Source: Bugula neritina (lineage: Eukaryota > Animalia > Bryozoa). From it: a DNA stretch of 64,000 nt. The stretch lies in contig OZ037767.1 in NCBI GenBank assembly GCA_964035545.1, positions 15,256,998 to 15,320,997 of the forward strand, read 5' to 3'. The notes under the pieces were generated by a model. The model searched no databases, had not been told where the DNA came from, and saw only the letters and a list, made by a program, of their open reading frames with translations. The position numbers and the translations under genes were made by a program. Below, in pieces: positions 1 through 59,100 of this stretch (its first letter is position 1; every line of letters starts with the position of its first letter).

Positions 1-974
1 TCTATAGGTATTCTTTCTGCATGGTTTGATATATTGAAAAGTTTTAGCTGCTGCTCTGTTGTCAGCTGACTCATCAAAAGAGTGAGAATCTCTGTTTGGT
101 TAGTCTTAGCTGCTTCCTGTATCACTGTATTACCATCTCTATTCTGTATCTTGAGTAGCTCCACCTTCTGTTCTACTGACACACCATCTAGTAGACATTT
201 GATGGTGTCAGTATGTCCTCTCCATGCTGCACAGTGTATAGCTGTCTCATCCTCACTGCTCTGTATCTTGAGTAGCTCTACCTTCTGTTCTACTGATACA
301 CCATCTAGTAGACATTTGATGGTGTCAGTATGTCCTTCGCATGCTGCAATGTTTATAGCATAAGACTCAGTTGTCTTGAGTAGCTCTACCTTCTGTTCTA
401 CTGATACACCATCTAGTAGACATTTGATGGTGTCAGTATGTCCTCTCCATGCTGCACTGTGTATAGCTGTCTTATTAAGGGAACTCTGAGTCTGTATCTT
501 GAGTAGCTCTACCTTCTGTTCTACTGATACACCATCTAGTACACATTTGATGGTGTCAGTATGTCCTTCCCATGCTGCACAGTGTATAGCTGTCTCATCG
601 TCACTGTCCTGTATCTTGAGTAGCTCTACCTTCAGTTCTACTGATACACCATCTAGTAGACATTTAATGGTGTCAGTATGACCTCTCCATGCTGCACTGT
701 GTATAGCTGTCTCATCTTCACTGTCCTGTATCTTGAGTAGCTCTACCTTCTGTTCTACTGATACATCATCTAGTAGACATTTGATGATGTCAGTATGTCC
801 TCCGCATGCTGCCCTGTGTATTGCATCACACTCCTCACATAATAGTCTATATCTCTCTTCTAATGATATGAAAGGAAGGCACTTCTTCAGCTCAATCAGA
901 ATATTTCCCTCTTTATCTCCACCTCTAATACTAGTGAGTATTTGAGTAAACTTTAGCACTTCATTCTGATTCAT
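1..974 (-). CDS. Intronless ankyrin-repeat protein, 3'-partial (>=324 aa; N-cap plus ~7 ankyrin-like units)
   Basis: Manual translation from ATG at 974 stays open to position 1: MNQNEVLKF...CDAIHRAACGGHTDIIKCLLDDVSVEQKVELLKIQDSEDETAIHSAAWRGHTDTIKCLLDG...SNHAERIPI. TAIHxAAxxGHxDxIKxLL matches the ankyrin consensus. It is absent from the ORF track because it has no stop inside the window. Confidence 0.93.
   Translation of the reverse strand, partial: MNQNEVLKFTQILTSIRGGDKEGNILIELKKCLPFISLEERYRLLCEECDAIHRAACGGHTDIIKCLLDDVSVEQKVELLKIQDSEDETAIHSAAWRGHTDTIKCLLDGVSVELKVELLKIQDSDDETAIHCAAWEGHTDTIKCVLDGVSVEQKVELLKIQTQSSLNKTAIHSAAWRGHTDTIKCLLDGVSVEQKVELLKTTESYAINIAACEGHTDTIKCLLDGVSVEQKVELLKIQSSEDETAIHCAAWRGHTDTIKCLLDGVSVEQKVELLKIQNRDGNTVIQEAAKTNQTEILTLLMSQLTTEQQLKLFNISNHAERIPI
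117..826 (-). repeat. Coding tandem repeat of ankyrin units (spacings 117,117,123,108,117 bp)
   Basis: The anchor AGTA(G/C)ACAT ends at 780, 663, 546, 423, 315 and 198. All spacings are multiples of 3. Confidence 0.95.
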
Positions 975-22677: not shown

Positions 22678-22923
22678 TTATGTCTGAGGACGAGATACTG
22701 TGAAATTATGCCCTGCATCTAGTAGACATTTGATGATGTCAGTATGTCCTCCGCATGCTGCCCTGTGTATTGCATCACACTCCTCACATAATAGTCTATA
22801 TCTCTCTTCTAATGATATGAAAGGAAGGCACTTCTTCAGCTCAATCAGAATATTTCCCTCTTTATCTCCACCTCTAATACTAGTGAGTATTTGAGTAAAC
22901 TTTAGCACTTCATTCTGATTCAT
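22678..22923 (-). pseudogene. Truncated duplicate of the ankyrin gene 5' end fused to the transposon terminus (81 aa)
   Basis: The first 69 codons are identical to the gene at 974. They are followed by AGHNFTVSRPQT*, read from the element's right TIR. Confidence 0.9.
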
Positions 22924-24231: not shown

Positions 24232-27200
24232 CAGTATATATTTTCCTAGAATGTTGTTTAGAGACATAAAAAAACTGCCTATGCACAACATACTTTGCAT
24301 CTGTTTAGTATCTCGTAATTAAACATAAAAAAATCAAAGCCAATTATAAGGCAAAAGACCATAATACTGTACTATCATTGGATAGTTCTTCATCAATAAA
24401 CAGGTAGTCGCCAGTGGTGGATATGAACCCCTCCTAGATGTTTCTCGTACTTCTTCCTCAAAAAACATTTTCATTAAGCCAAAAAGAAATAACAATACAC
24501 CTTTTTAGTTGACAGTTTTTAATTTCTGACTGATATTTCACCTTATTTCCAATTATAATTAACTTTTAACCGGCACTTTTCTTTGTAGTAATTCCTACCC
24601 TTTAGACTGTGTACTTTGAAATGAGTCTGTTTTACTCGTTACATAAAGTATAGTTGCACTGGCTACAGGTTGACACAAAAGCAAGCCTATCTTGATAAAA
24701 TCATGCGCAAATGTAGAAACTACCGAGGAGTTTGTTCCTCATAATTAGAAATTGACAAATTATTTTTAATCCGTTTAAAAGCATCTGGTTAGGGAAGCAT
24801 ATGCCGTGTTCAATTTGTTATTCTAGCATTAACAATAACAGAATGCAATAATTATAAGTTTATGAAAGTAATTTGTTTTCTTTCTAATTACAAATATAAT
24901 ATTTTAGTATATATTGTAAATTTATAAGGCTTGCATTAGGAATAACGCAGCTAAAACATCATTTTCCTTAAAGTCTAAAAATATATAAGTATAACATAAT
25001 ACACTATGCCAATAAACTTATTAAAGTACCAAGCAAGCTTAGCTAGTTTAAAAAAAATTACACTAGGTAAATTCCCATTATTTATAGAATGCTTGCTGAT
25101 ATTAGCTTTTGATGTAATTAAAGTAAATTATTATTTATCTTTCTATAAGCTAAGGATTTCTTGCCGTAAGTTTTGCTTTTATGCATGGAGAAATGTCGTA
25201 ACAAACGAGTTAAATTTTTATAGCACATAAAAATGTAATCTATAAGACGAAGATATTTAAACTTAGCCATTAACTCATTTTAATTAGCAATGTAGCCTAA
25301 ATCTAATACAATACAAAATATATACCAGTATATATAATATATTTTTACCATGCTGTTAATTACAGTATTTGTAAAACAAATTTTATGCTCATTAATTAAA
25401 TGCAACAAATATTTATAAAATACTAATAATGTTGAATAAATAAATTCAATAATTCCTTTTCTATTTAAATGGCTGCATAATTTCTTGCAAGGTTGTATAA
25501 AGGAGTTGTGGCCTACAACTTATTATGTGTTCAATTGCCACATATATCTTAGGAAGAAGAAAACTCCCCAAAAATTCTTGGTTTGAAAATTCTAGTATAA
25601 TTAAAATCACTTAATATATGTCTTTGAAATGCATTTTGCCACTCTGCAAAATTGCAGGAACAAATATTGCATGAAGTAATAAATGATTTATGAAGTAATT
25701 AACAAACCAATGTAAAAACTGTTGTTGTATATAGAACACAACATTTTGATTTTCTTCAATTTCCACATCAAATCTATATATTCAATTATATCTAACCAAT
25801 GCTAATAAACTAAACATGCATGCATACAAATATTTGCATCATATGCAAGTAATATTAGCTAATTAGCAACTACAGCATTTTTTTCATTATCTTTATTGCT
25901 TGCATAATTATGTCTAAGTATTATTAAAATAAGGTTTTTATTTGCAACTTTGCACCACAAATTACATATAATCTAAAAACTTGAGTTGTGACATAGGGCT
26001 ACCTATACACAAATAGACCTTCATAAAACTCTCAATGATTTTATTCAACTCATGTATGCAAAAGTTTTACTTTAAAACAATTCTTCTAAATCACCCTAGA
26101 GCAGGAAATTATTACAAAAACAGCTTCTCATATATAATCTTTCCCCAGATTAATTTTTTTTCCTGTATTTAAACTAACTTAGCAAGTGAAGATTGTGATA
26201 TCACTCAGGTATAAATCACATATATATTATTCATAGCTGTAATACTTTAGCAATGAATAGATCATGTTTAATTTCCACTGTACCTATAGCAGTTTTTCAG
26301 AATTATAGAGCTATGTATATCGTGAAATTGGAATAGCCTAATAGTTTTACATGTGTTTATAGCTAGACAAATTAACTTAAGAGGCTTACAATAATTAAAT
26401 GATATTTGCATTCTTTTGAAGGTTATGGCGAAGCTACTGCAAAACTGGCCATTAGTTTAGCATAATATGCAATGCCACGCAAAAGCATGCCAAACAAGCA
26501 ATGTTTATTTACCTTACCAGTGCAATTTTATCACCTTAAACACAAAAGCAAGTATAAAATACACATCCATATTAGATTAACTGACAAGTTAAAAAAAGAC
26601 AACATATTTTCATGAGCTGGTTCTGTTTGCACAAGTACAATTTAGACCAGCTTATTATTTAGATTGCCACAAAAATATGACATAAAATATGTCTTTAATC
26701 ATTATTTTGATATTCACTGGTTGAAGATATTTTTTATATCCTAATATGTAAATATTGTACATAAATCTTAAGAATTAACTAGGTGAATAAGGAAAACTGC
26801 TAATTTTATGAAACTGTTATGTTAATAAAGACAATGGCTATCAACAAATCCCACCAGACCACAAACTAATTGTAAATACTAAAGCAATTATATAGTGCTA
26901 TATATTGATCTAGCCTAATCAATACACCACAAAGATGTATTATGACATACCACATTTTAAGTACTGGGTTACCATTTATTTTAATGGGTATTTGTTTAAA
27001 CTGTTATATACAGCTTTTTGCACTACTAATATACAAGCCAGTTGTTATTCTGTCACTTTTTATCTACATCTCTTTTTAATGCCAGTTACTTGTTAGCTTC
27101 AGTACAAACAGCTAAACATTCTACTCTACAGCCAATCTTACTGTTAACTCTTGTTTAACAATATTACAAGAATCTAAAAATTTGAGTGTGTTTTAAGTAT

Positions 27201-30200
27201 AATATTCTATCATTATAACTTTTAAATGAAACAATAATATGATAAATGCATTATAACTTTCTGAAAAGTTTGTTTGCAAAGTATATGTTTTTCGAAAATA
27301 GTTTTACAAAATTTGCTAGGAGCATTATATTTATTTCTATCTAAAATAATTTTGTTTGAACTGCTGTGTTTGTAATCATGTAATCAGAAGTAAAGCATCA
27401 GTAAAATGAGTATAAGTAGAAGCTTGACAGCTACATTAGGCATTGCTACATAGTACATAAATACATGGCCGTATTAAATACTTAGCTGCATTCACAGATA
27501 AATGCATGGCTTGGAATTACAATACCATGAATACATTATTTATTTAGCTGGGTAACTATACAATTATGCCAAAGTGAAAAGCCTTTGGTTATTAATGCCT
27601 GAAACGTCTAACAATCTACTTGGGAGACCACCTTGTTGTTACAGAGTGAATGAGTTATTTGTTTGGCATTTGGATGATGGCACAAAGAAAGGCTATTTGG
27701 TTTGTTACTTGAGACTAGTAGCAAACTGCTACAGTCATAGCATCTTAGAAGATTTTGCATCACTTGCTAGAATTGTACATTATTTTAATGTAGCTATTGA
27801 AATTAATATCTCACTGAAAACAGAGTATTGCAAAATCTTAAGCTGTACATAATTATATTATGCATCAAAAAGTACTTCTGCTATTTGACTATCCCAGGTT
27901 TATTTTAAACTAGCACTGCCAAAGTACCTTGACTCTAATACAGTGTTTACTAGCTAATTTTGTTCTTCTCAATAGTGAAATAGATCTATTGCAAGAAATT
28001 AATGACTAGATATAACAATAATGATTTTTAGGCAAGACTTTCGCATCTATATTGCTCATCTGCTAGCTTGAAATACCCCTCTCCTTGGACTAATCTCAGG
28101 CTTTTCATTGTTGTTTAAACAGTTTTCAAACTCCTATTTCAATAAATCATTACCAACACTGCCTGCATGTATTAATATTCATTAGTGCCATCAATGCACT
28201 GTGGAGACAGCACCTGATGTTCTGTATATTACATTATAGTACAGAGATACTAAATCCAAAACATCTAAAATAATTGATGCTTCTACCAGATTTTTAGCAC
28301 ACCTATAATATGTATTCCTGTAGTAAATATTAATAAGATGTTTTAACTGATAGTTTTTATGCCATTATAATAGTTTGATACTATAACTACAACTTGAAAC
28401 TCTTTAACCAGCACATTGGTTAGTAATATTGCTTCTTGATATTTAATTGCTGGTTCACAAACTATCAATAATAGGGATGCATATCAAAACTTGACTGCAA
28501 TCATAATATGATTTTAATGCTAGGTAATGACTAAGCATGTCTGGCTGATATGAGGTGACTATTTTGTACACTGTTTAACAACATCAGTTTTTTGGGTTCA
28601 TTTAAAGCATCTGCAAATCTGTATTATACATAATTACTGTTAGGGCCAATAAATTAAATTGTTAACCCTGAAATGCTTTTTACACTGTAATACTAAGTAG
28701 TAAAAGACATGTATATATGTATATAAACTGATTGTAATTTATACATAACATTGTACATTTAAAAAAAAATCACAAAATACATAATTTATTAGCTAAATTT
28801 CAAGGCGTTTTGTAGGTAGTGGGTTAATGTCAATAAAGTAGAATCCGGGAAGTTGAGTAGCTTTATTCAAGAGGAAGGCTCTCCAACAGTTCTACCAAAG
28901 CCTAAATAACATGTATAAAATAAAGGTTATATGTACAATTTTTTTTCCAAAACAGCCTGCAACTGTTTTGCTATTGCATATGCCCTATGCCATTCATCAA
29001 GTGGAACAATTTTAACCAGGATATCTAGAAAAGTTGACACAAGGGCTTTATAAACTATGTAACAGTAAAACTGTGAGTAGAAATTAATTGACACTAATGA
29101 ATAATGCTTTAGGTGCTGGCAACAACCATAAAAGAAAAGTTATATAACAAACAAATAGAAAAAGCACTAAACAAATCAACAGCATTATATACAATTGGGG
29201 CACATACATGAAAACAGCAGCTAGTGTCATTTTCTTAAGACAGCACTATTTTAGGTGTAAATTTAAGAAGTATTAGAAAATGCAGAAATTTACTGCAATT
29301 GGTTCATTTTATTTAAGTTAGTACATACTGAAGATCTCAAGTTTTTGCTAATGAACATGAGTTTTGGCCCGAAACTAAAAAAATATCAATAAATACACCT
29401 AAATAATCAAGGCTCTTTTTAATTTTCTTTGATTTCCTATGCTTTTTTCTAATTACAGCAACTTCTGACTGCGGATCGCCACGGTTAGTTTGTAACAGTA
29501 GGCAATCCAAATGAAATGAATAAATAGGAAAAAACATGAGAAATCATGCAAAATTAAGAAGAACCTTGATTATTTAGGTGTATTTCTTGATGTCTCACTA
29601 ATTTTAAGCAAAAAGCATTGTTCATTAGCAGCTAAATTGTAAAAATGGCTAAAAACTGCAGATTTCCAGTGTGTACTAAATTAAATAAAAGGACTCAATC
29701 ACCTTTGCAACATAATTCAATAATTGCATGGTCAAGCAGAATAAACTACAATTAACAGCAACAACAGTGTAATAGTTGCGTAGAAAAGTTGTACTGCAAA
29801 AAACTAAAAGAATGCAAAATCTATAAATGTGTGCTACTAAGTAAATGCTGAACAGACATCATGAAATAGTGTACGAAATACAAACTATTAAACTTACCTG
29901 TTGATCTAATGCAGCCAAAACCTTAAGCTTAGAGTAGTGGAATGGTGCTGTTCGATGTTGATATGCTACAAGTAGCTAAGATGACTCAAATTCTTGCCTT
30001 TAGGAGTAAGAGGCCTCAGCTCAGTTTCAACAAAACTTCTAATAATCTCAACGGATGCGCTCAATTAGGAGCCACAACAAAGCACACCCATGTCATTTTA
30101 CTAAACTCTAAAAAATGAACGGAAATAAAACTGTTAGAGAGTAAACAGAGAAACATATAGTGATGGGGGAAAAACCTGTCAGCAAAGGTTATATACACTC

Positions 30201-33200
30201 ATAGTCATAATACGGAGAAAAAGATAATGAATAACAAGCTATTCAAGATTACACAAGAAACCAAACAAATTTCTTTGACTAAAAAATATAATTAAATACT
30301 ATATTACTTGGCAAAAAATATTTGTTTTGAACACCGTATTATTGGGAAGAATTGCCAGTGTCTTAAATTTTGAGATTAAAGTTTCTGCCTTATAGCGGAA
30401 ATAGAGAGGCAATCAATAGCGTACAAAACATGTTTTCAGTCATTGGCTGTTGACTAAATTGACAAAGTTAAAGAAAGCTTCCATATCATTATTTATTTTG
30501 TTCTCAAGTGTGTGGTTACAGTTTCATGAGTCAGAAATATAATTATTTGAGATATGAAATCAAATGTAGTCAAAAGAGTGTCATACAATTTAAAATGTAG
30601 TAATAGAGCTTTGACAATAATTTCTTCTGCTAAGTAAAACAGGTACCATTATGTGCTACTTATCTTTTAGAGATGAACATCAAGGATGTTGAAAACAAAA
30701 TAGTTGTAAATTACAGCAAATACCTTTCTACTTACCTAACCAGAGAAAAAAAGTTTTCAGCCTTGCATGCACTCAGCTGGTTTTCAATGTTTGGACCAGT
30801 GACATCTTTATAACTGATAGCAGCATTATGTGATAGCTTTAGGAATTGTTACCTTAAATCTAAATTATATAGAACAAGAAATGCAAAAATATGGCATTAG
30901 TACTCATTGCACAATACACATTTGCTAGAGTAGCTAATCTAGCATCACATTAATTTAAGAAAGACAAAATTTTATTACTGTTCACAATTAATGATGAATA
31001 TTAAAATTTGAATAATTAGACAAATTAACAATGATATTGATGTTAGTTCAAACATTACTAATGGTAAACACCAAAATACTAATAGGAATAGTCATGTTAA
31101 CATCAATTAGAAAAGTAAAGATAATTTGAAAATGAGACAGTTTATAGGTCTAACTCTTATAGTTGACAAGCAATTACAGGGCAGTCATATTGATGTACCC
31201 TCAAAATGTAGCACTTTAAAAATATTAAAAAGACAGCACATATAAGAACATAATCTTAAAAATAGGCATATGTGACACCTATATTTTGATTAACAAAGAA
31301 ATCTTCTTTACTTTATTAATCTAGCTCATATAATGGTATTCTGTCTTAGTATGTTATTTTAATACTTGAAATCTAATCAGCTACAGAAAAGTACTTCAAT
31401 TCAAAGGCCTTCATAATTATTCTTTAGTTTGCTATTTAAATAGACAGTAAGGTTGATGAATAAAATAAAAGTTAGTAAAGTAAAAACTAAATAAATTGAG
31501 AATAATATCTCCACTCTAAGGTTATAATCATTATAAATTGATATTTTAATACTCCTGTTATCCTTAGGTATAGTTGTTAGCAATTCAACTATGAGCTCGA
31601 AGCCAAATGTCAGTATCAGCATCCCCATTACATTGACTAAGACTGACTTTATAACCCTCAAGCTGTGGCACTCAATTTATATAAGTAGTAACTAATAACA
31701 AATATAAAATTATTTATTTGCTACTGATAGTGATAATAACAATAATTAAAAATAATAATATGATCAATTAAAATAGAACTAATAAAGCCAACGACGTTAA
31801 TGGTATGTCTAACTAAACATGGCATGTCTCGTCTGGCAGTGGGTATGTGGAGGACCAGGCAACCTACGGCCGTCAACCCGTTACTGGCACAACTAGAAGA
31901 AGATACTCAAGAGAAGACAACAAAGTTGTCATGAAATGCTGCTTCAAAAGTACACCCAAATTGAGAGGTTATAGAAAAACAATGTATGAGCTCTGTAGAC
32001 CCGGATCAAAGAATTATTTAAAAAGAATGTGCAAACGCTGGAAAACAGAGGAGAGTTTAACATCAGCGAATAGAGACTAGCGGATTAAGCAAGAACTATG
32101 AAGAAACACAAGCATTTTATGGAAGAAGAACTCCATAAGATTGAAGAAGGAACCTTGCAAGAACTAGGCACATCAATTGGTGAAGAAGATAATGAAGAGC
32201 TAAATTTGCAAATAGAGGATGTTATAGTACAACATGAGATAGCATATAAATCAGCCATGAGAATTTTAAGAGTACCTAGTTCAGAGGTAGAAAAAGTGTT
32301 ATAGTAGAAAAATTATAAATGAGCATAACAAACTATCTAATGATCGACCAACACTAAGAGCCCTTAGGCACATTGAGAGGGTCAAATTACTACAGGCAGT
32401 AAAACAGATTAATGATGTGCTAAACTGTGTTGAGATTATTAATACCATTGAGCTTAATAACACCACCATGGCTTGTGCGAAAAATAGTAACAGAACAAGT
32501 GTGTAACAAAAAGGAAAAAGAAAAACTGACAATGTACAAGTATGGAAAATACGACTGCAGAAGAAATAAAAAAAAATTAGATCAGACTTAAGTAAAATAG
32601 CAGAGTGAAAAAGTAGAGCTTACAATGATTCATTGAGAAGAATGGTTGAAGAAAAATATAGGATAAAAAACAAAGAGTGTGGTGAAGTGATTGAAAAACT
32701 GAAGCAAAACCTGAGAGCTGTAAGCCAGAAGATAAACAGATATACATAATGAGTTGATCAATATAATCAGAACACAATGTTTACAATGATAAGCGCTTTT
32801 ATCAAGAATTACGAGGAAATGAATGTACATCTAAAGAGGCACTTGACAAGGAAATCAAAAGCATTCTGATAAAATATATGGGGTCAGCCAACTAAAAATA
32901 ATACCAATGCAGAATGACTAAATAAAGTTAGCAACAAATTGGAGCATATGTAAAGACAAGGAAATTAGATCTTAAAAACGATGCAAACAACTGGAATAGC
33001 AATTAATGTCATAAGGTTGATAAGAAAAAGCATGAAATCTGGAAAACACAACTGAAATACCTGGAAGAAAAGATAGGAGAAATAAAGATCAAACTAAGAA
33101 TTTTCCGAGGAGACTCTTTATCTTTATCCCTTTTCTCCAACTACCGATTCGCATGACAGAAGCGGCTCAATGATGCAAATTTCGACGAGACAGAAAACAA

Positions 33201-36200
33201 ACCATCTCCTATATGTGGATGACCTGAAGGTAAATAGGAAATCAAAGTCAGAACTGGAAGCTTTGGTAAACACTGCCGGGATCTTCACAAGGAATATAGA
33301 AATGAAATTTGGATTAAAAAATGTGCCACACTGGTTATGAGAAAGGGAAAGAAAATCAAGGACACAGGAATCAGTTTGCCTGATGAACGGGTAATCAAAG
33401 ATCTGGGTGAGAAGCCGTATAAATATCTAGAAGTTCTTGAGATTGATAGAATACAAATATATGAAATGAAAAATAAGATCAAGGAGTACTACAAACAAAT
33501 AAGAAAGGTTTTGGATTCAAAACTGAATGGTGAGAACACAATCAAAGCAATAAACACATGGGCAGTAACAGCAGTGCATTACACAGCTAGAATACTTGAC
33601 TGAACTGTTTCATGAGCTAAAAAATATGGACTGAAAGACAAGGAAGCTAATGACAACAAACCGTGCACCCTATCCGAGAGCAGATGTAGGCAGGCTGTAT
33701 TTTAGCAGAAGGGAAGGCGGTAGAAGAATGTTGTCAACTGAAAAATGCATAAAGATTGAAAACTGCAGCATGTCAGACTACATAAATATAACATAGACTG
33801 ATAGAAACACCACACTGAATACCTTTCTAAAAGACAAAACAGCGGTAGAACTAAATAATGATAAAGTGATAGAAAGAATTGATGAGTGTAAAGAAAAAGC
33901 TTCACGTGGTCAATACATCAAAATGGTGGAAGACATGAAAGCATTTTCCTGGAACTGGTTGAAGTATGGTTGGCTGAAAAAGGAAACAGAAGGACTGCTG
34001 ACAGCTGCGCAAGATCAACTATTCATTACTAGAAATTATAAAGTGGCTATGGTGAGAGAACAGGGTAGCAAGAAGTGTGGAATGTGTAACGCAAGAGACA
34101 AAACTTCGATGCACGTATTGAGTGAGTTTGAGAAGGTAGCAGAAGGAGAATATAAGAAAAAACACAACCTTTTGGCATTGATAATTTCAATAGTAGTTGT
34201 GTGAACTTCGTGGGTTTCAGAAAAGTAAGAATTGGTACGGCCATCAAGCAGAATCAGTACTGGAAAATGATAATGTAAAAACCTTGTAAGATTTTAACAT
34301 ACACACTGACGTAGTCATCAAAGTTAGGAGACCCGATATATTAGTAGTTGACAAGCATAATGCTGAAACAACGATAATTGATATCACAGTCCCTGTTAAC
34401 TACAGAGTAAAAGAAAAAAAATTCGAAAAGTTAGGAAAATATCAGAATTTAGCACTAGAATAAACCCGCCTTTGGAAAACATCAAAAAAGTCATCCCGTT
34501 GTAACTGGAGCCTTTGGAGCTTTATACAAGATTGTAGACTGGCTGACACTACTTGGAGTAGCTGAAAACAAATGCTCATTAATTCAGCAGACACCCTTAC
34601 TAGGATCAGGATAAGCTCACATCCTGAGGAAAGTTCTATCCATTTCAGCCTAGTATAACTAGGCCAATGGTAAAAGGTTACACCAGCTAAAAAACTACGG
34701 TCAATCAACAATAATAATAATATACAACTATATTAGTGCAGTTGGTTCTATTATTAGATTAGCATATCGATTATGACTTTTCGATTGCCACCCTGATACT
34801 ATGAGTAAAATGTACAAGCATACGTGAAAGTATAGATATGATCATAAGTATAAAAATAGGTATAAGTATAAATATAAATATAGGTACAAGTATAAAACGA
34901 ATGATTATATTATTAATAATATTAGTCAGTGATACCTATAACCGTAATGGTTTTTAGACTTACAGTTATCATTAACATTAGCTGAGTAATATGATTAGTT
35001 AAAATAATGGTATTCATTATTATATCATAGTTATAAGTTATAACTCTAGTCTCTAAAGAGCAACAGCAAGTGTAATTGGGATATTCATATTAAACTTCAT
35101 ATTCACATAGTGCAATGTTTATGTTATGAACTAATTTATTCCTTCAACATTTAACTATAAATATGATTAACACTAACTTTGACCAGCAGTATTACTAAAA
35201 GAAGCGTATTACACATATAAGATAATAAAATTCTAGTAGTAGGACTAATAGTATTACTAGGTCCAGTATTATTCTTGTTATCTTATTCATCATTCATGAG
35301 TTATCAAATTTAAAATTACTACTTATTAGCATCAGCATATAAAAAGTAAGATCATTAGGAATAATTATCATGAGGTATGATCTATGATTTGCATTATTCA
35401 GATATAGTTTAATATCAATATGATATATTATTATTGCTGATAGTCTATGTTATAGTTAAATTTATACTTATCTTTACAGTTACCTATAGTAGCACTTCTT
35501 AGTTATTTGTGGTAGCCAAACTAATGTTTAATATTAATAAATTAAACTGAGTATCATAAAAGTGTTACTAAGAATTTTAATTATAATCGTAATGGTGATC
35601 ATATTACTTTATTATAATTATTATATTTAATCATTAATGCTCAACTGAGTTAATGTATACACTTTGAGTTTTACTATTACTCATTATATTTACACTTATA
35701 GTAAAACTAAATATGTAAAAGTTATACTTATACTATTATTATTCGTATTTCATTAGACTTACATCTAAGATCGCAGTCCTATTACTACTACCACTGATAC
35801 TAGTACTACAACTAGTACTAGTACTGCTACTAGTACTAGTACTACTACTACTACTACTACTACTAATAGTACTGTTACTACTACTACTACTACTAGTACT
35901 ACTACTAGGTCTACTACTGTACTAGTACAACTACAAACTTTGAAAATAACTGCAAGAAAGGTATGACTTACTCTTTTTCTTAGTCTTACTGTGACTCTCA
36001 GTCGTAAAGTAAAATAAAATTGTGAACTGTAAAGTTAAACCCAAGGCTGAAATTTATTTAATTAAATTTAGACAATCTGAATCATTGGCTCAATCCTTGA
36101 GTTTGACTATTACTATTATTATTAGTGTTACGATTGTGATTATCATTGGCATTATGCCATTATCATTATGATTGTAATTGTGGTAATTCTAACATTAATT

Positions 36201-45004: not shown

Positions 45005-48000
45005 CACAGAGAGAAATATTAGTGTTAGAGTGAACATTAGCTGACAACTAAAACAGCTCGTTTTTTGGATCCCTAAATTGACCAGCAGTGAATAGAAATT
45101 AGTGTCAGGTACTGTTCACAGTGAATAGTATGTTAGATCAATGTTGATATAAAGAGTTGTGAAGTTGATTCTTAGTATTTATCACAATGAGCCAAGTTAT
45201 GTTCAATGGTGATCTTATATATGTTCAATGGTGAGCTTAAATATTTTCGATGGTGATCTTATTTATGCTCAATAGTGATATTATATATGTTTAATAGTGA
45301 TCTTATTTATGCTCAATAGTGATATTATATATGTTTAATGATGATCTTATTTCTGTTCAATGATGATCTTAGATATGCTCAATGCTGAACTAAGTTATAT
45401 TCAAAGCTGAACTTATAAATGTTCCATGCTGCTCTAATGTTTGTTGGAAATAAGCTTCTGCAAAAATTATTACTGATCACTCTGAACTAACTTGTCATAA
45501 CTTCTAACCAGTAGAAGAGTATAGTAATGTGGATTTTATTGTATATGATAGTTGAATATAAGAAATGCAACAAAAAATAACTTCTAAATATTAAAATAAG
45601 AAAAAAAAACATGAAAATAAGCATTTGCAGAATTTTTCTACGACTGTAAATTCAGTTAACTTTTCTCAATATTAGCAGAACCTGCTAAAACCATAGTGTG
45701 TGTCATTACATTCTTGCTCTGTAGTGTAGCGATAACCAAGTCCGAGGTCTGTGATAGTAACCCAAGTACGGGAGGGGGGGAGGGGGAAGTTTTATAACTA
45801 ATTCTAGCGGTTAGTAAAGTGTGGTAGAACTCCGAGAAGAGTTGAGCGGTCAGGGAAGCTTGAAGGAGTAGTATAAAAAAGGCAGCTGAGTTCTTGAAAA
45901 GTGGGTAAGGTGTAGTGTCGAGAGCACCCAGTGACGATTGTAATGTAGTGGTGAGTGCGTCTGCTTGCAGGCTGAAGGTCTCAGCATGACTCAAAGTTTT
46001 GTAGTGGTCAAATTATTTTTTGTGCTCCTATTCAGCATCTTTGAGTGTATGTTCTTAAAAAATGTTATGGGATCTACAACAAAAGATAAAATTTGGGTAA
46101 TATTTAAACTGTATTAACATGAACAGTAAACATTTGGTTAAGATATACAATCACAAGCAGCTTATAAATTAAGTTCAACTTTGAAGAAGCTGAAGTCTAA
46201 GGCCAAAACTAATAGTATCAATGATGATAGCTATGAATCTTTCAGCATATTTTCAGCACCATCGTACCAATCGTTTGATTCTGAATAACCATACAGGCTT
46301 TGGCAAACTTATGATCATTATGTTTCGTAGTGGGTTAGTTTGGGTTAGTTTGAGCTTATCAAAATTAAGTAACAATTTTGGCCATCATTTTATTTTATTT
46401 CTTTCTTAATTACAAATGCAAGAGCTGTTGGGCATAATTAGTTCAGTTAATAGAAGCTTCTCTGCATTAAAATTATCTCAAAATGTCAGTGAACCACAAT
46501 TTAAGCTGGAGTCAGCATTTTATATGGACCCCTCATATCGAGATAACAGATATTGATAAGTTTCAGTATGTCTATAAATTGAAAAACAAATAAAGTACTA
46601 CCAAGAAAAATATTGCTACTTAAACATGTTTTTATATTTCATTGTGCTGTGCAAAGATAAATAAAAGAATAAACTGGTAGCACGGAAGTTAATAAAAAAA
46701 TTTGCCAACTCACCACTAATATTGGCATTTTGGTACTTAGCTATAAAACAAGAAGCTAGCTTGGCAGCTGCTTAAGGCTAATAACTACTTGTAGGCTGCT
46801 AAACTGCATTATTAACAATATGAATACTTCTACAATGGGGGGGGGGGAATTCAAATTAATGAATTTAGCACAAATTGCTAAAAGGTGAAGTGGAAATAAA
46901 ACGCTACATTTTTTGAAAATATATTGTTACAGGAAAACTTGTATCAAATTGATATAGGAATAGAGTAGTTTGGGAAATACAAGTTAATGTGGTCTCTTAA
47001 AAGTTATAGTTGCACAAATTCAATTATCTGTCTACAGCAATAGTCATACTGTCATTGTGATTGTGATATAAAATCAAAATGACAACGTTAAGCAAATGAT
47101 TGAGCTTACCTTTTGCTGCAATGACAACTTCAGTTCCTAACTCTGAAAGAAAGTGATCATCTTCTATCTCTGAAAGGTAGCTGCAATCTTTACCCATGTG
47201 ATGAAATGATTCAATGTTTTCCATGTTGTGAGGTTGTTTGGAAGCACAAATTCACTGAATCTCAAAGCACAACCTCTTAGTCTGAGCCTCTGGTGTTCAC
47301 TATGCCGGCAGAATATTTCTTCCGTCAATAGCAGTGAATGAAAACTATGTGCTGTTATGTAATAACCTTTGTTTTGCTCTTTCGATGCTTGGTAAGCCAG
47401 TTTCTTGCCTTTGAATTACAATTTAAATATTTCCTTACTATAGCTCTGTTATGCAACATCTTCTTTTGTTCCACCAGGTAGTTTACACAAGTTTACACAA
47501 GGCTTTTGAAGTGGTTCACCTGATCCACAATTGACTATTCAGTAGCTTGTTTCATTGTTAATTCTAAGCTTCTTGTTTGAAACACATTTGCTGATAACTG
47601 AGTACATTGGAGTTTAAAAGTGCATCTCCCTGATTTCTCTTTTACGCACATTTTAAATTAGTTGGCTTTCCTTTCCATGGATGAAATTGACTAGTGAAGC
47701 CTAAACTACCCATGCAAGAGATATGTGCAGTTGAAATTTTTTGTTGATAAATTCAACCTAAGTCTTTGATAAACGGAGTGGGGCAATGTTTAATAGTAGT
47801 CTGGTAACAAGCTATTTGAAAATGTCTTGGGTTCAAAAAAATTTCGAAATCATAAACAGCTAGTAGGTTGAAGGAGTTTCATTCCACTTATATGCTCCCC
47901 AGTTAGGTTGTATTTTTTGTTTTGGTACTAAGTATTATATACCTATATACCCTTATATAACTTTCATATCAATTGCTAAACATAAAATAACCATTAATAT

Positions 48001-48709
48001 GATATATTTGCAATAATATTTAAATTTTTCCAAATTTGTGTTGAAAAAAAGCATTAAATGCATTAATAATAACATTTTTTCAAAAAACAAAAAATATAGA
48101 AAATGCAAAATTAATAGGTTTATGCAGAGCAAAGAAATTTATTTGTGTGCCAATTATAAAAAGCAATTGACTCTAATTTATTTAAATGCACATATATTTC
48201 AATAGTATTCAAATAAATTGCACGTAAAATGTATAAATAGCATCTAACTGGGAAGCACCAATTGAAATGACCCAAATGTAGGGTTCAACTCTATCCTAGC
48301 TTCCTATAAAGGTTTGTGATCATCATTAGTGCACATGTGAACGAATAATGTTGTTAGGTGAACAACTGCCGATTGTTCCATAATTCTTATGTAAATAAAA
48401 TTTTGCTTGAACATATGTAGTTGTAGCAATGATCTCACTTTCTGCTCCTATCAACTACTGTTTAGCTTCATTAAGACCTAGGGATGATAATTACGTAATA
48501 CTTGTGAAAAGTAGCGTTGACTTAACAACTAAGTGGTTTCAGAGCTACTACAAAATATTTTTCAGCTTACACTAATCGGATTAATTTTCAATTTCATCAA
48601 AATAAGTGCAGGTCTAACAACTATTAGAGGTGTGGTGCAGGCTATACCGACAATAAAAGGCTCTTTGAACAACTTTAGTGCAAGCACTGCACTAATATTT
48701 CTCTCTGTG
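45005..48709. mobile_element. Non-autonomous CACTA/EnSpm (CMC)-like DNA transposon, copy A, in a CPEB1 intron
   Basis: Perfect 20-bp TIR CACAGAGAGAAATATTAGTG...CACTAATATTTCTCTCTGTG; 2-bp TSD TG (45003-45004, 48710-48711); subterminal tandem repeats. Confidence 0.88.
45185..45430 (+). repeat. 22-bp subterminal minisatellite, ~11 units (copy B ~50117-50362)
   Basis: CAATGGTGATCTTATATATGTT-like units, with an alternating 44-bp pattern in the middle. Confidence 0.92.
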
Positions 48710-48791
48710 TGCAGTCAACACTCCAAGGATACATTGATATATTACATAGTATAAATAATTTAGTAGCAGAACATGGCTGTATCTGTTGTAG

Positions 48792-49937: not shown

Positions 49938-52900
49938 CACAGAGAGAAATATTAGTGTTAGAGTGAACATTAGCTGACAACTAAAACAGCTCGTTTTTTG
50001 GCTCCTAAATTGACCAGCAGTGAATAGAAATTAGTGTCAGGTACTGTTCACAGTGAATAGTATGTTAGATCAATGTTGATATAAAGAGTTGTGAAGTTGA
50101 TTCTTTGTATTTATCACAATGAGTCAAGTTATTTTCAATGGTGATCTTATATATGTTCAATGGTGAGCTTATATATTTTCAATGGTGATCTTATTTATGC
50201 TCAATAGTGATATTATATATATTCAATGGTGATCTCATTTATGCTCAATAGTGATATTATATATGTTTAATGATGATCTTATTTCTGTTCAATGATGATC
50301 TTAGATATGCTCAATGCTGAACTAAGTTATATTCAAAGCTGAACTTATAAATGTTCTATGCTGCTCTAATTTTTGTTGGAAATAAGCTTCTGCAAAAATT
50401 ATTACTGATCACTCTGAACTAACTTGTCATAACTTCTAACCAGTATGAGAGTATAGTAATGTGGATTTTATTGTATATGATAGTTTAATATAAGAAATGC
50501 AACAAAAAATAACTTCTAAAGATTAAAATAAGAAAAAAAAAACATGAAAATAAACATTTGCAGAATTTTTCTACGACTGTAAATTCAGTTAACTTTTCTC
50601 AATATTATCAGAACCTGCTATGACCATAGTGTCATTACATTCTTGCTCTGTAGTGTAGCGATAACCAAGCAGTTGTGGTGTGTAATGGTTAGCACACCTG
50701 TGTGCAAGTTCGAGGTCTATGATAGTAACCCAAATACGGGAGGGGGGGGGAAGTTTTATAACTAATTCCAGCGGTTAGTAAAGTGTGGTAGTACTCCGAG
50801 AGAAGTTGAGTGGTCAGGGAAGCTTGAAGGAGTAGCATAAAAAAGGCAGCTGAGTTCTTGAAAAGTGGGTCAGGTGTAGTGTCGAGAGCACCCAGTGATG
50901 TAATGTAGTGGTGAGTGCGCCTGCTTGCAGGCTGAAGGTCTCAGCATGATTCAAAGTTTTGTAGCGGTCAAATTCTTTTTTGTGCTCCTATTCAGCATCT
51001 TTGAGTGCATGTTCTTAAAAAATGTTATGGGATCTACAACAAAAGATAAAAGTTGGGTAATATTTAAACTGTATTAGTATGAACAGTAAACATTTGGTTA
51101 AGATACACAATCACAAGCAGCGTAAATAAATTAAGTTCAACTTTGAAGAAGCTGAAGTCTAAGGCCAAAACTAATAGTATCAATGATGTTAGCTATGAAT
51201 CTTTCAGCATATTTTCAGCACCATCGTACCAATCGTTTGATTCTGAATAACCATACAGGCTTTGGCAAACTTATGATCATTATGTTGGGTAGTGTTTGGG
51301 TTAGTTTGAGCTTATCAAAATTTAGTAACAATTTTGGCCATCATTTTATTTTACTTCTTTCTTAATTACAAATGCAAGAGCTGTTGGGCATAATTAGTTT
51401 AGTTAATAGAAGCTTCTCTGTATTAAAATTATATCAAAATGTCAGTGAACCACAATTTAAGCTAGAGTCAGCATTTTATATGGACCCCTCATATCGAGAT
51501 AACAGATATTGATAAGTTTCAGTATGTCTATAAATTGAAATACAAATAAAGTACTACCAAGAAAAATATTGCTACTTAAACATGTTTTTATATTAAATTG
51601 TGCTGTGCAAAGATAAATAAAAGAATAAACTGGTAGCACGGAAGTTTATAAAAAGTTTTGCCAACTTTGCCAATTCACCACTAATATTGGCATTTTGGTA
51701 CTTAGCTATAAAACAAGAAGCTAGCTTGGCAGCTGTTTAAGGCTAATAACTACTTGTAGGCTGCTAAACTGCATTATTAACAATACAGATACTTCTACAA
51801 TGGGAGGGAATTCAAATTAATGAATTTAGCACAAATTGCTAGAAGGTGAAGTGGAAATAAAACGCTAAATTTTTTGAAAATAGATTGTTACAGGAAAACT
51901 CGTATCAAATTGATATAGGAATAGAGTAGTTTGGGAAATATCAGTCAATGTGGTCTCTTAAAAGTTATAGTTGCACAAATTCAATTATCTGTCTACAGCA
52001 ATAGTCATACTGTCATTGTGATATAAAATGACAACGTTAAGCAAATGATTGAGCTTACCTTTTGCTGCAATGACAACTTCAGTTCCTAACTCTGAAAGAA
52101 AGTGATCATCTTGTATCTCTGAGAGGTAGCTGCAATCTTTACCCATGTGATGAAATGATTCAATGTTTTCCATGTTGTGAGGTTGTTTGGAAGCACAAAT
52201 TCACTGAATCTCAAAGCACAACTTCTTAGTCTGAGCCTCTGGTGTTCACTATGCCGGCAGAATATTTCTTCTGCGAATAGCGTGAATGAAAACTATGTGC
52301 TGTTATGTAATAACCTTTGTTTTGCTCTTTCGATGCTTGGTAAGCCAGTTTCTTGCCTTTGAATTACAATTTAAATATTTCCTTACTATAGCTCTGTTAT
52401 GCAACATCTTCTTTTGTTCCACCAGGTAGTTTACACAAGTTACTTAGGCTTTTGAAGTGGTTCACCTGATCCACAATTGACTATTCAGTAGCTTGTTTCA
52501 TTGTTAATTTCAAGCTTCTTGTTTGAAACACCTTTGCTGATAACTGAGTACATTGGTGTTTAATTGTGCATCTCCCTGATCTCTCTTTTACACACATTTT
52601 AAATTAGTTGGCTTTCCCTTCCATGAATGAAATTGACTAGTGAAGCCTAAACTACCCATGCAAGAGATATGTGCAGTTAAAATTCAATTTAAGTCTTTGA
52701 TAAACGGAGTGGGGCAATGTTTAATAGTAGTCTGGTAACAAGCTATTCGAAAATGTCTTGGGTTCAAAAATTTTTCGAAATTATAAACAGCTAGTAGATT
52801 GAAGAAGTTTCATTCCACTTATATGCTCCCCAGTTGGGTTGTATTTTTTGTTTTGGTACCAAGTATTATATACCTATATACCCTTATATAACTTTCATAT

Positions 52901-53619
52901 CAATTGCTAAACATATTTGCAATAATATTTAAATTTTCCCAAATTTGTGTTGAAAAAAAGCATTAAATGCATTAATAATAATATTTTTTCAAAAAAACAA
53001 AATATATAGAAAATGCAAAATTAATAGGCTTATGCAGAGCGAAGAAATTTATTTGTGTGCCAATTATAAAAAGCAATTGACTCAAATTTATTTAAATACA
53101 CATATATTTCAATAGTATTCAAATAAATTGCGCGTAAAATGTATAAATAGCATCTAACTGGGAAGCACCAATTGAAATGACCCAAATGTAGGGTTCAACT
53201 CTATCCTAGCTTCCTATAAAGGTTTGTGATCATTATTAGTGCACATGTGAACGAATAATATTGTTAGGTGAACAACTGCCGATTGTTCCATAATTCTTAT
53301 GTAAATAAAATTTTGCTTGAACATATGTAGTTGTAGCATTGATCTCACTTTCTGCTCCTATCAACTACTGTTTAGCTTCATTCAGACCTAGGGATGATTA
53401 TTACGTAATACTTGGGAAAAGTAGTGTTGACTTAACAACTAAGTGGTTTCAGAGCTACTACAAAATATTTTTCAGCTTACACTAATCGGATTAATTTTCA
53501 ATTTCATCAAAATAAGTGCAGGTCTAACAACTATTAGAGGTGTGGTGCAGGCTATACCAACAATAAAAGGCTCTTTGAACAACTTTAGTGCAAGCGCTGC
53601 ACTAATATTTTTCTCTGTG
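49938..53619. mobile_element. Non-autonomous CACTA/EnSpm-like DNA transposon, copy B, in the CPEB1 3'UTR
   Basis: Same TIRs (1 mismatch on the right) but a different 2-bp TSD, TA (49936-49937, 53620-53621). Same orientation as copy A. Confidence 0.88.
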
Positions 53620-54414
53620 TAGTGTCTCATTGTTGCTTACTCTTGTTCTGTTTATTTTGCTGTTTTGTTTGCTGCTATATTTTTCCAAGCTTTATTTTTT
53701 TAAGCCAGTGGTTTTAAGTAAAACTTCCTTTATTTCATGTTTTAAATCCTTGCTTAGTAAACATCAAAAACAAACAAAAAAATGATTAAAGGCTCCCTAT
53801 AGTAAAGTGTGTAGATTTTAATAATTTAGTGAAGGATGTTTAAAGGTATTAGAGCTGTTTATTTGCTAGTCTTAGGGGTGTAGTTTTGTATTTTGTAGAA
53901 TAATATTAGCTGTTATATTATATTAAACATAAATAAAAAATCTCGCACATGATTTATTCGCCAACAATTAAATCTGCACCCAATACTTGAATAAGATCAT
54001 AAGGAACTATATATTATAGTGTGATATATAGGTACACTGTTAAACCAAAGGTGCTTCATTGTTACTCAAACAAATTTATTTGTGGTTTTTTAATGAAAAT
54101 GATTAGTAGAAAATATTCAGATAGTTTACAAAAAGCAGCAAAGCTCAGAAAACAGAATAATATACATATTCCATGCCAGATGCATTACATAACACTGTTT
54201 ATTGAATATGCATGTTGTATGTCGAGTGTTGATTACCAATATAGCTGGAATACAAAATCAGATTTATATATCATATAGCTAAATATTTAGAGTTATATAC
54301 AGTTAGCTCAAATGTATATAAAAAGATAATATTACAGAAGAATAAAATGAAACTTTTGTGTAAAGAAATTAAAAAGAACATTTCAATATTTTAGGTTCAA
54401 ATTTAAAGAAAATT

Positions 54415-56135: not shown

Positions 56136-59100
56136 ATGACAGAACACACAACAAAACACCCGGGAGGTAAGCCAGCCAATTTCTTGCATATGGAGGAGGT
56201 GTATAGAGATAAACTGACCGCTCCCACCTGTACGGGTGTAGAAGATGTAGAGCAATTCATCGAGGAATTCCACGATGTGGCAGACGTCGCTCAATGGCCG
56301 CCACAAGTAGCCCTCGTCAAGCTGCGGGAGGTATTGACGGAGCGCGCTAGACCGTTCGGACAAGGACGGAGCGTGGCGGAGATATTCACTGCACTACGGA
56401 GCCGTTTTGGCATCTCCGCCCAGGAAGCCAGAGCCGTCTACAAGTGCTACCCCAGGCGGAAGACACTCCGCTCCGCGACCACGTTGCCTTAGTGAAGAGA
56501 CTGGCACGGAGCGCGTACAGCGACCTGTCAGAAGCACACCGACGGAGCTTTACTCTCATTGACTTCATGCAGTCCCTAAAAGATGTGGGTCTCTGCCATC
56601 AACTACAGGCGAAAGGAGTGACCACCCTAGAAAGTGCCCTACAAGTCGGGGAAGACTACCTCCGGGCCGAGCAGCTATACACGGAGAAAACAGAAGGCAC
56701 ACGAGTCACCGCGGAGGTAGCCCAATTACTCGGGGAGAAGATGGGCCGGCTGAGCGTCAGACTGAAGCAGATGGCAAAGACCCTTACCAATGCCGGGCCC
56801 CCTAACCGAGGACAAAAGGGAGAGACCTCAGAGAAGACTACCCGGAGTAGGAAAAGCGGCAAGCCAGGGCCTCCCCGCTCCAGAGACCCCCAACCCAGAA
56901 AGAGGCCTCACGGGCCGAAGAGAGAGCAACCACGGGACGTACCCCGTGAATGGCAGATACCACGACAGACCATCCGCCCTACCGGGCGACAGGAACCGTT
57001 CGTGCTACCAATCACCAACCGCTTCAGCCAGCTACCGGAGATGGAGCTGGCCGGCAAGGTCCCTCGGGACATCGGAGGGGAACTAAACACCCCTCCGCCA
57101 AAGAAGCGGCACCAGCAGACCACCAAACGGACACCACGCCGTTTGACCAAGACTACGCATGCTGGGGAAGTAAGGTTGCAACCTCATGGAGAGAGCTACT
57201 TCCTGCCCGGGAAGGTAGCCGGCAAGGCCGTCACGTTGTTGCTAGATTCCGGTTGCAACACGAATCTCCTCAGCAGACGAGTCTTAGATGCCCTCCCTCT
57301 CCAGGTGAGGAAGGAGTTAGCTCCCTACACCGGGGAACCTGGCACCCTTGCAGACGGGTCGCGTATCCCCTTCTACGGTGTTGTAAAGCTGCCTGGCAGC
57401 GTCCGCGACCAGGCCATCCAGGAAACCTTTATCCTCAGCCAGCTAGAAGAGGATGCCATCCTGGGGACGCTGTTCTTGAAGCGACACCAATGCCACATGG
57501 ACTTCCATAAGTCCGCCATACTAATGGCCGGCCGGGAGCTTTCCTGTGTCGAAAAGCTCGGCCGTCCCCTGGTCGGGGGTGTGCAGGTGGTACGTAACTG
57601 TACAGTGCCCGGCCGCTCCCGGGCGACCATTCACTGCAGAGTGAATGACCGTCAACTCTCTGGATTAGGGGTCGTTGAAGAAACGCACAAGAGAATCCAA
57701 CTCGCCAGCAGCTTGAACCGGCTGACTGACCGAGGGGAGATCTTGGTGCAGTGTGTCAACCCATTTTCAGAGTCGGTGACACTACCATCTGGATCCCTAT
57801 TGGGCCGTTTCCACGCGGTCCAAGAAGGAGACATAGGACCGTCGCTGGGCGAGGCGACGGAGGGTCCCCAAGAGCGCCCGTCTGTACGACGGGGGACCGT
57901 CCCGGAACACGTCCAAGAACTATACCAGTCAGCCTGTGAAGGCTGTGCGCGCAACAAGGAGTGCCAAGCTATGGCCCAGTTGCTGCGCCAGTATGGGGAC
58001 GTGTTCAGCAGCGGAGACCAGGACGTGGGCCTGACTAGAGCCGTCCGTCACGAGATACCGCTAGCTGCCGGGACTCTGCCTATCCGCCAACCCACTAGGA
58101 GACTGGGGCCAGAGAAGGAGAAGGAGGTCAGCCGACAAGTCCGGAATCTTCTGAACCGCGGCCTCATAGAGCCTGCACATAGTGCGTAGAGCTCGCTGGT
58201 CGTTCTGGTCCGGAAGAAAGACGGCAGTTGGCGGTTCTGTGTGGATTACCGCAAACTTAATAGTGTAACCATACAGGACGCCTACCCTCTACCTCGGATC
58301 GACGAGTCCCTGGACGCCTTAGCCGGCAGCAAGTACTTCAGTACTTTAGACTTGCTGAGTGGCTACTGGCAAGTCCCCCTCAGTCCCGACGCCCAGGAAA
58401 AAGCGGCGTTCATCACCAAAGATGGGCTGTGGAAGTGGAAGGTACTGCCCTTCGGGTTAACTTCCGCTCCTGCTACCTTCCAGCGGCTCATGGAACAGGT
58501 TCTCAGCGGCCTCCACTGGAAGACGCTGCTCGTCTACCTCGATGATGTCATTGTCATCTCCCCAGACTTCACGACCCATGTCAGTCTTCTGCGTGAGGTC
58601 TTCGAGCGACTCCGAGGTGCCGGTCTCAAGCTCAAACCTTCCAAATGCCCTCTTTTGCAGCCGGAGGTGAAGTACCTGGGGCACGTAGTCGGCCGTAATG
58701 GCGTGGCGACGGACCCCGATAAGGTGCGAGCTGTGGCTGACTGGGTCACCCCCCAGGACTTGACCGGACTCCGGGCTTTCCTGGGGCTGGTAGGGTATTA
58801 CAGACAATACATACCAGACTTTGCGGGGGTTGCACAGCCGTTAAATCGGCTCACTGCAAAGGGAGTGGCCTGGCAGTGGACATCCGTCGAACAAAGGGCA
58901 TTCGACAGTCTCAAGAACCGCTTGCTAGAGGCTCCAATTCTGGCCTACCCAGACCCCGCTCTGGAGTACGTCCTTGACACAGACGCCAGTGACCAGAACG
59001 TTGGTGCTGTGCTGTCGCAAGTGCAAGAGGGCCGTGAAGTAGTCGTAGCTTACTATAGCAAATCACTCTCACCCCCTGAGCGCAATTACTTCACTACCCG

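Follow-up and report, generated by a model that had tools for sequence, protein, structure and literature searches.

Variable recognition by solenoid repeats is known from the VLRs of jawless vertebrates, from the LRR receptors of plants and animals and from fungal NLRs. The VLRs of lampreys and hagfishes are LRR proteins which are assembled somatically from donor cassettes and are either displayed on the cell surface or secreted. In ankyrin repeats the target-binding surface is formed by the β-turn together with helix 1, and these are the positions that are randomised in DARPins. The closest described analogue of the gene family considered here is the class of ankyrin repeats with high internal conservation that occurs in fungal NLRs, although the family is not a member of that group. 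The repeat units of these fungal proteins are at least 85% identical over 100 residues or more, their number is polymorphic, and they are reshuffled within and between genes (PMC4986451, 2014). Positive selection acts there on a few positions per unit, which lie on the concave face built from the inner helix and the hairpin loop, and such highly conserved repeats were found in only 0.8% of metazoan repeat proteins (PMC4986451).

The family of the bryozoan Bugula neritina has much in common with the fungal ankyrin repeats: unit identity of at least 85%, a variable number of repeats (3-21 units among paralogues, as compared with polymorphism in the fungal case), reshuffling, and selection on the concave face; the fungal proteins are intracellular. 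Unlike the fungal NLRs, the Bugula gene has neither a NACHT or NB-ARC domain nor HET, HeLo or a similar effector, as judged by Pfam searches of exons 2-8. The array is N-terminal in Bugula and C-terminal in the fungal NLRs, a LEAFY-like helical tail makes up the constant part, and the host is an animal. The protein would work like the fungal-type NLRs but, lacking a nucleotide-binding domain, is not one of them. With DARPins the family shares a fixed consensus scaffold and variation at positions 2, 3 and 5 of the β-turn and 13 and 14 of helix 1. In contrast to DARPins it is natural, has 39-residue units with three helices in place of 33-residue ones, and carries a long linker and a tail fused to the array; moreover, position 10 and the length of the loop also vary, whereas position 33 is nearly fixed. 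The resemblance to VLRs lies in the repeat solenoid, the variable concave face and the constant frame. The difference from them is that the repeats are of the ANK type, the germline arrays are complete, donor cassettes were not found in the genome, and there is no signal peptide.

Gene structure and the ankyrin head

The window, that is the whole analysed stretch of 64,000 nucleotides, corresponds to positions 15,256,998 to 15,320,997 of contig OZ037767.1 (C3 below). On its minus strand an open frame begins with an ATG at window position 974 and extends beyond the left window edge (translation of window 3-974). The full open frame of exon 1, read from the wider locus, comprises 358 codons (L001:1396-2472). 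The exon passes the left edge by ~82 nt and has its donor, CCAG/GTAGAA, near C3:15256915. The gene is composed of the following parts.

Window 1..974, minus strand: in-window part of exon 1, the ankyrin head (translation, full open frame, splice sites)
Window 825..974, minus strand: N-terminal cap, residues 1-50, helical and non-repeated (AlphaFold helices 3-15, 22-35 and 38-47)
Window 150..824, minus strand: six ankyrin units, residues 51-275 (Tandem Repeats Finder period, unit table, model, Foldseek)
Window 30..149, minus strand: C-terminal capping ankyrin unit, from residue 276 (AlphaFold helices 284-290, 294-301 and 306-314)
C3:15252357-15256003 (L044 258-3904), minus strand: exons 2-8, to the left of the window (collinear with KAF6025908.1, stop-free)

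The whole 8-exon gene spans C3:15252357-15257971 on the minus strand and has ~900 codons. Window 1-974 is most of its exon 1, so the window holds the head only. The donor of exon 1 and the acceptor of exon 2 give the junction QVP/DFWKEQTH, which is also used in the NCBI paralogue models P0001 and P0042 (KAF6025908.1, 1,298 residues). All eight exons are collinear with KAF6025908.1, none of the 8 exon translations contains a stop, and the top protein database matches are hypothetical proteins of Bugula neritina. The NCBI models of this species are AUGUSTUS predictions with transcriptome hints (PMC7576161). Taken together, the splice signals, the conservation and these models lend support, short of proof, to a single 8-exon transcript in which head and tail are joined. 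A single sequencing run spans the locus, in short contigs, and its even coverage of introns and exons identifies it as DNA. A preliminary description of the window had regarded the gene as intronless. This view has to be abandoned: the gene has 8 exons, of which the array forms the first, and conserved tail exons follow downstream on the same strand.

The array itself was delineated by Tandem Repeats Finder at window 142-821, with a period of 117 bp, 5.8 copies and 86% matches. The head scores 161 bits against Pfam Ank_2 (cut-off 27.3, E 1e-47) and 119.7 bits against Pfam Ank (cut-off 21.1); it belongs to the ankyrin repeat superfamily (PF00023 / PF12796) as a length variant. Each unit comprises a finger loop, which is 5, 8 or 10 residues long, helix 1 with 8 residues, and a scaffold of 23 residues formed by helix 2 and an extra third helix. 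The unit is 39 residues (117 bp) long and not the canonical 33 with two helices and a β-hairpin. In the single-sequence AlphaFold model of the head (pLDDT 83, exceeding 90 across most of the array; pTM 0.79) three helices are seen in every unit, the third being built from the six residues by which 39 exceeds 33. The best Foldseek matches of this model are AnkB, DARPins and FEM1B, with a probability of 1.00. The C-terminal cap is a diverged ankyrin unit without the family scaffold.

Much of what had been read from the letters of the repeats holds good. The loops IQDSEDET, IQDSDDET, IQTQSSLNKT, TTESY, IQSSEDET and IQNRDGNT and the helix-1 forms HRAACG, HSAAWR, HCAAWE, NIAACE and HCAAWR are all present in the translation, the loops of this gene do change length in frame (5, 8 and 10 residues), and the estimate of ~39 residues per unit agrees with both the 117-bp period and the unit table. 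Variation is concentrated in the loop and helix 1, as had been stated: within the gene the 69-nt scaffolds differ by 3.9% and the 24-nt helix-1 segments by 14.7%. The mean identity of the units is 88-90% over ~225 residues, and units 3 and 4 have no scaffold differences and five differences in helix 1. The variable positions were also said to be those of the binding face that are randomised in DARPins, and this is borne out by the alignment of residues 243-269 to positions 3-30 of the Pfam Ank profile; the predicted clustering of the variable sites on one surface is based here on alignment to the ankyrin consensus and not on the coordinates of the model. The scaffold had been described as almost identical even at synonymous sites. 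It is indeed near-constant, but its synonymous difference (pS 0.16) is close to that of the non-repeat caps (0.12-0.18) and of the tail (0.19), so no special synonymous invariance exists. The scaffold is merely as young as the gene family, and its likeness from unit to unit reflects youth and conversion, not special constraint.

Paralogues, array turnover and selection on the groove

The Darwin Tree of Life assembly of B. neritina has a size of 216.00 Mb (PMC11480708), and 216,009,554 bases were searched for family members. The head gives 154 matches in a protein search of its own genome. Tail exon 7 gives 24, which define about 19 genes; each of the main ones is preceded on its strand, 3.5-4.7 kb upstream, by an ankyrin exon. 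The copies are distributed as follows.

C3 15.17-15.88 Mb (9 to 10 genes), plus C2 32.26 Mb: close subfamily, heads 76-87% identical
C3 17.26-17.40 Mb: sister cluster of 8 genes, heads 55-70% identical
C8 and C2: more distant family copies (exon 7 matches)

The sister cluster, situated ~2 Mb away, has the 8-exon layout, the 39-residue unit and the selection pattern of the 15-Mb subfamily. Its tail blocks are 55-85% identical in protein to those of this gene, with 78-81% for exon 7. Judging from these sequences, a single 8-exon family comprises both the 15-Mb genes and the 17.3-Mb cluster; the 15-Mb genes form a separate subfamily, from which the sister cluster differs in its cap sequences and in scaffold variants (Y for C, D for E). 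The arrays of the nine close paralogues contain 3, 5, 6 (this gene), 8, 9, 14, 14, 17 and 18 units, 94 in total, and the longest array of all, with 21 units, is found in the sister cluster. All nine close paralogues have intact frames and complete capped arrays. The gene is accordingly one member of a multigene repertoire, as had been supposed, with about 19 family genes and nine close paralogues. When one 117-bp unit was compared with the genome, all 145 matches fell within family genes or one truncated duplicate. The search for orphan cassettes thus came back empty, and the comparison with a VLR-like cassette system, which had been part of the preliminary description, cannot be upheld.

The truncated duplicate belongs to a duplication inside the window.

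Window 767-22716 and 22716-44729, no strand assigned: tandem duplication of ~22 kb (self-BLAST, 98-99% identical; mirrored Tandem Repeats Finder rows)
Window 22717..22923 (C3:15279714-15279920), minus strand: truncated second gene copy, first 69 codons (protein 100% identical)

The left breakpoint of the duplication falls inside the first scaffold of the array. The truncated copy, with an open frame of 92 codons, is a product of this duplication according to the genome protein search and self-BLAST. The duplication itself may be either real and young or a haplotype duplicated in the assembly.

The turnover of the arrays has left clear traces. Three paralogues contain blocks repeated at 97-100% nucleotide identity, with offsets of 4 units in the 15.17-Mb gene and of 8 units in the 15.41-Mb gene (100% identical in both) and of 3, 6 and 9 units in the 17.27-Mb gene; such multi-unit blocks bear the signature of recent tandem block duplication. 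No pair of units reaches 97% identity in the present gene. Along it, however, the nearest paralogue switches, and tracts of 98-100% identity adjoin tracts of 80-90%. At the 5' end the 15.88-Mb gene is nearest (98% identity), in the C-terminal cap, intron 1 and exon 2 the 15.44- and 15.17-Mb genes (98-100%), in the middle of the gene the 15.71-, 15.41- and 15.36-Mb genes, and in the last exon the 15.41-Mb gene (99%). This mosaic of nearest paralogues points to gene conversion or ectopic recombination. Together with the 100%-identical block duplications it substantiates the earlier view of a recombination-shuffled gene. Mixed combinations of loops and helix-1 forms, which had likewise been reported, are abundant: 85 units show 53 loops, 52 helix-1 forms and 70 combinations, and the TTESY loop is paired with seven different helix-1 forms. 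At sites which change this fast, recurrent substitution and recombination are indistinguishable as sources of such combinations.

For the analysis of selection the positions were set in advance from DARPin design (33, 2, 3, 5, 13 and 14). Among 51 unique units, pN is 0.395 and pS 0.309 at the chosen positions, as against 0.057 and 0.162 in the 23-codon scaffold. For the non-repeated parts the values are pN 0.084 and pS 0.18 (N-terminal cap, 8 paralogues aligned), pN 0.066 and pS 0.116 (C-terminal cap, 9 paralogues aligned), and pN 0.027 and pS 0.19 (tail exons, ratio 0.14). To limit saturation and pseudo-replication, contrasts were taken along a minimum spanning tree with 50 edges. On these contrasts pN at the chosen positions is 0.181 and the pooled pS 0.081, a 2.2-fold excess whose direction is robust and whose exact ratio is not, the counting methods being applied to recombining sequences, where they are open to bias from gene conversion and from comparing units that are not independent. 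The excess amounts to 139 nonsynonymous changes observed against 62 expected (Poisson P 3e-17). Relative to the local pS of the chosen positions themselves the ratio is a modest 1.68 (binomial P 0.026), while pN/pS of the scaffold is 0.36, and the split into nonsynonymous and synonymous changes differs between chosen positions and scaffold with a Fisher P of 3e-14. A tree-free lower bound, counted as states minus one, gives 37:9 versus 27:21 (P 0.015). The pattern recurs in the sister cluster, where the local ratio is 2.58. In this gene alone, helix-1 positions 10, 13 and 14 have pN 0.366 and pS 0, and the scaffold pS 0.079 and pN 0.026. A nonsynonymous excess at the positions of the binding face, which the earlier reading implied, is therefore present in both clusters, where pN lies above the scaffold or pooled pS.

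Linker, β domain and helical tail

The products of exons 2 and 3 are rich in P, Q and S and have no family match; a P/Q-rich linker of ~350 residues follows the head and is probably disordered. Exons 4 and 5 encode a small β domain, which is poorly modelled and for which Pfam gives only a weak, sub-threshold OTU1 UBX-like hint. Exons 7 and 8 encode a helical domain of ~105 residues; in P0007, a natural protein that consists of the tail only, it is modelled with pLDDT 94-98. For the fold and for searches that call for joined exons, natural models served, the full-length P0042 (KAF6025908.1) and the tail-only P0007.

Among 48,161 representative PDB chains, the best match of the helical domain is the DNA-binding domain of moss LEAFY on DNA (4bhk_A; Z 7.3, rmsd 3.4, 107 residues, 13% identity). 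This match spans the whole domain. The next ones have Z of at most 4.1 and are mostly helix-turn-helix DNA binders (TetR, KorB, Spo0J, SopB). Foldseek returned five LEAFY structures for the tail, with E of only 0.1-0.5. The DNA-binding domain of plant LEAFY/FLORICAULA, a seven-helix fold with a helix-turn-helix, is thus the best structural match of the helical tail domain, but it has no detectable sequence similarity to it, and the Bugula protein does not contain the SAM oligomerisation domain. Neither tail exons 2-8 taken one by one nor the full-length and tail models gave a Pfam match above threshold; LEAFY/FLO was matched by none of 37 tail homologues. The PDB profile search with the tail yielded no LEAFY chain and only chance-level rows, and feature-based as well as shape-based searches of the ESM Atlas brought nothing of use. 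A weak match to CCDC106 (E 0.0048, below the Pfam cut-off) is seen in a tail homologue from Watersipora. A helix-turn-helix type fold, closest to LEAFY, is probable for the modelled domain, the match being a middling one, and that the tail may bind DNA is a reasonable suggestion from the model.

Exon 7, used as the query of an exhaustive profile search, retrieved 36 representative proteins. One of these, from Watersipora, possesses the same β and helical tail without an ankyrin head, so that the tail must be older than its fusion to the head. A hydropathy scan predicted no signal peptide or membrane helix in any exon, the Kyte-Doolittle mean over any 19-residue window being below 1.6 in each of them. 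For this reason the predicted protein is probably soluble and intracellular, and an intracellular role would fit better than that of a cell-surface allorecognition receptor, for which such a protein is poorly suited.

Interpretation and possible function

We regard the family, with reasonable though far from complete confidence, as an inherited repertoire that diversifies, its members being intracellular ankyrin binders which share a constant output tail; it is produced by block duplication, gene conversion and selection for change on the groove. The predicted protein consists of three parts: the ankyrin solenoid, the P/Q-rich linker, and the small β domain with the LEAFY-like helical domain. 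Blocks of units duplicate in tandem, probably through unequal crossing-over, which gives arrays of 3 to 21 units, and paralogues exchange tracts by gene conversion. Selection favours the replacement of amino acids in the finger loop as well as at positions 10, 13 and 14 of helix 1, all of them lining the concave groove, and the scaffold and the tail are held by purifying selection. Each paralogue may bind in its groove a protein ligand that is its own or that changes fast, and the constant tail may couple this binding to an output shared by all, DNA or chromatin being the likeliest. The diversity would be inherited through the germline, not built in body cells. The analysis shows the structure of the gene, the size of the family, its block duplications and mosaicism, the pattern of selection and the matches in fold, and from these the binding of a ligand or of DNA, the place of the protein in the cell and any immune role are inferred.

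Two other readings bear on whether the repeats reflect recognition, and of what kind. In a process of neutral turnover the loop and helix 1 would be unconstrained surface, and conversion with recent duplication would keep everything else alike, so that neither selection nor recognition would be needed. The pervasive gene conversion, the very young block duplications and the low local pN/pS at the chosen positions (1.68, P 0.026) suit this reading, as does the fact that surface positions of ankyrin repeats are generally the least conserved, which is the established basis of DARPin consensus design. Nevertheless, neutral sites cannot exceed the synonymous rate, and here two independent clusters both have a pN that is 2.2 to 3 times as high as the pooled or scaffold pS. 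Conversion would also homogenise the variable codons, yet these differ even where the scaffolds are identical, as in units 3 and 4; and intact frames in nine of nine genes and the tail ratio of 0.14 are hardly what neutral turnover would leave. We consider it unlikely. An equally unlikely candidate is intragenomic conflict. The fast-evolving tandem family would then be locked into an arms race, selfish elements being the adversary, or into reproductive conflict (transposon control, meiotic drive, gamete function), and would serve neither to ward off pathogens nor to recognise other colonies. Families for drive or transposon control typically show the same tandem clusters, copy-number change, conversion and positive selection; repeats and a retroelement lie around the family loci, and a tail resembling DNA-binding domains would suit targeting to chromatin. 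On the other hand, the variable part is a protein-binding groove and not the DNA-binding part, unlike in KRAB zinc-finger genes. Nothing in the analysis separates such conflict from an immune role, and the partner in an arms race, be it pathogens, a heritable symbiont or selfish elements, cannot be told from the sequence.

Two further explanations concern the origin of the arrays. They could stem from mis-assembly, that is, from a collapsed or expanded repeat which falsifies the array or the copy number. The adjoining 22-kb duplication, 98-99% identical, could after all be a duplicated haplotype. Long reads, however, are easily long enough for the array, which measures less than 1 kb here and, in the largest paralogue, less than 3 kb; and its units can be told apart, none being 97% or more identical in this gene. 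In addition, an independent older assembly carries genes of the same kind and an independent DNA run covers the whole locus, which makes an artefact very improbable. Still harder to sustain is a somatic system of the VLR type, with an incomplete germline gene completed by copying ankyrin cassettes from donor arrays. The cassette-like units and their mixed combinations (70 in 85 units) are what such a system would display. But every family gene has a complete, open and capped array, no donor cassette fields exist among the 145 genomic unit matches, all of which lie in genes or the truncated duplicate, and no signal peptide is predicted for the protein; we give this explanation hardly any credence.

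Within the favoured reading of an inherited repertoire, a bolder version is possible but doubtful, and we put it forward tentatively. The family would then be an animal counterpart of the fungal hypervariable-repeat receptors, an inherited set of ~19 intracellular sensors in which the fast-evolving ankyrin groove captures a protein of a pathogen, a symbiont or a selfish element and the constant LEAFY-like tail signals directly to DNA.

Bryozoans are colonial animals with heritable bacterial symbionts, and we know of almost nothing that has been established about their immune or self-recognition genes. A literature search found no description of this family; an ankyrin-based, positively selected repertoire in an animal is likewise not described in the literature searched, and the Bugula genome papers, PMC7576161 included, do not mention ankyrin. 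New here are the placement of the 15-Mb subfamily, the absence of orphan cassettes and the finding that the synonymous divergence of the scaffold equals the neutral level of the family, as well as the recognition that the gene is a conversion mosaic and that its closest described analogue is fungal.

The family can be viewed as a natural experiment in DARPin-like design, from which the positions, loop lengths and unit numbers used by selection can be read, and its array comes together with an output domain of an uncommon kind, possibly a DNA binder. If the ligands of the groove were found, the recognition of intracellular non-self in a lophotrochozoan would become directly testable. If the sensor reading is true, the family would represent a one-chain immune design leading from sensor to chromatin without a nucleotide-binding switch, which is undescribed in any animal.

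Duplications in and beside the ankyrin gene

A tandem duplication of ~22 kb has its left breakpoint within the gene's first ankyrin scaffold, so that a promoter-bearing stub comprising codons 1–69 was left behind. The elements in question are as follows:

Window 767–22716 and 22716–44729: ~22-kb tandem duplication, copies 98–99% identical
Window 22717–22923: promoter-bearing stub of the gene (codons 1–69), open frame of 92 codons
Chromosome 3, 15256100–15256499 (4001–4400 of L044, the local stretch holding exons 2–8): word-depth peak in intron 1, immediately left of the window

The duplication could be young and real, or else it could represent a haplotype duplicated in the assembly. Another local duplication, of ~3.7 kb, occupies window positions 45005–48710 and 49938–53620 (94–96% identity) and contains an array of a 22-bp tandem repeat (~10.8 copies; 45198–45435 and 50130–50367).

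Repetitive elements

At the intron 1 peak the word depth in the independent DNA run X1 rises from a few hundred to 25,000–35,000, so the first intron of the gene carries a very high-copy short repeat. At window 56444–60808 (+) the G+C content is 54–58% (the genome has ~30%). Open frames of this block encode aspartyl protease, reverse transcriptase, RNase H and integrase domains, which identifies it as an LTR retroelement of the Ty3/gypsy type, one whose base composition is strikingly foreign.

Family members and origin of the fusion

Outside the window, at 15486798–15487045 of chromosome 3, a copy of tail exon 7 is split into two overlapping matches and contains a stop. Since, in addition, no ankyrin exon is found upstream of it among the protein search matches listed, this copy probably represents a tenth gene of the 15-Mb subfamily, now broken.

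In the bryozoan Watersipora subatra (proteins P0037 and P0005) the beta-plus-helical tail is a stand-alone protein of 286 residues, and a separate short ankyrin protein is built of the same long unit type with the third helix present. The head-tail fusion may thus be restricted to the Bugula lineage.
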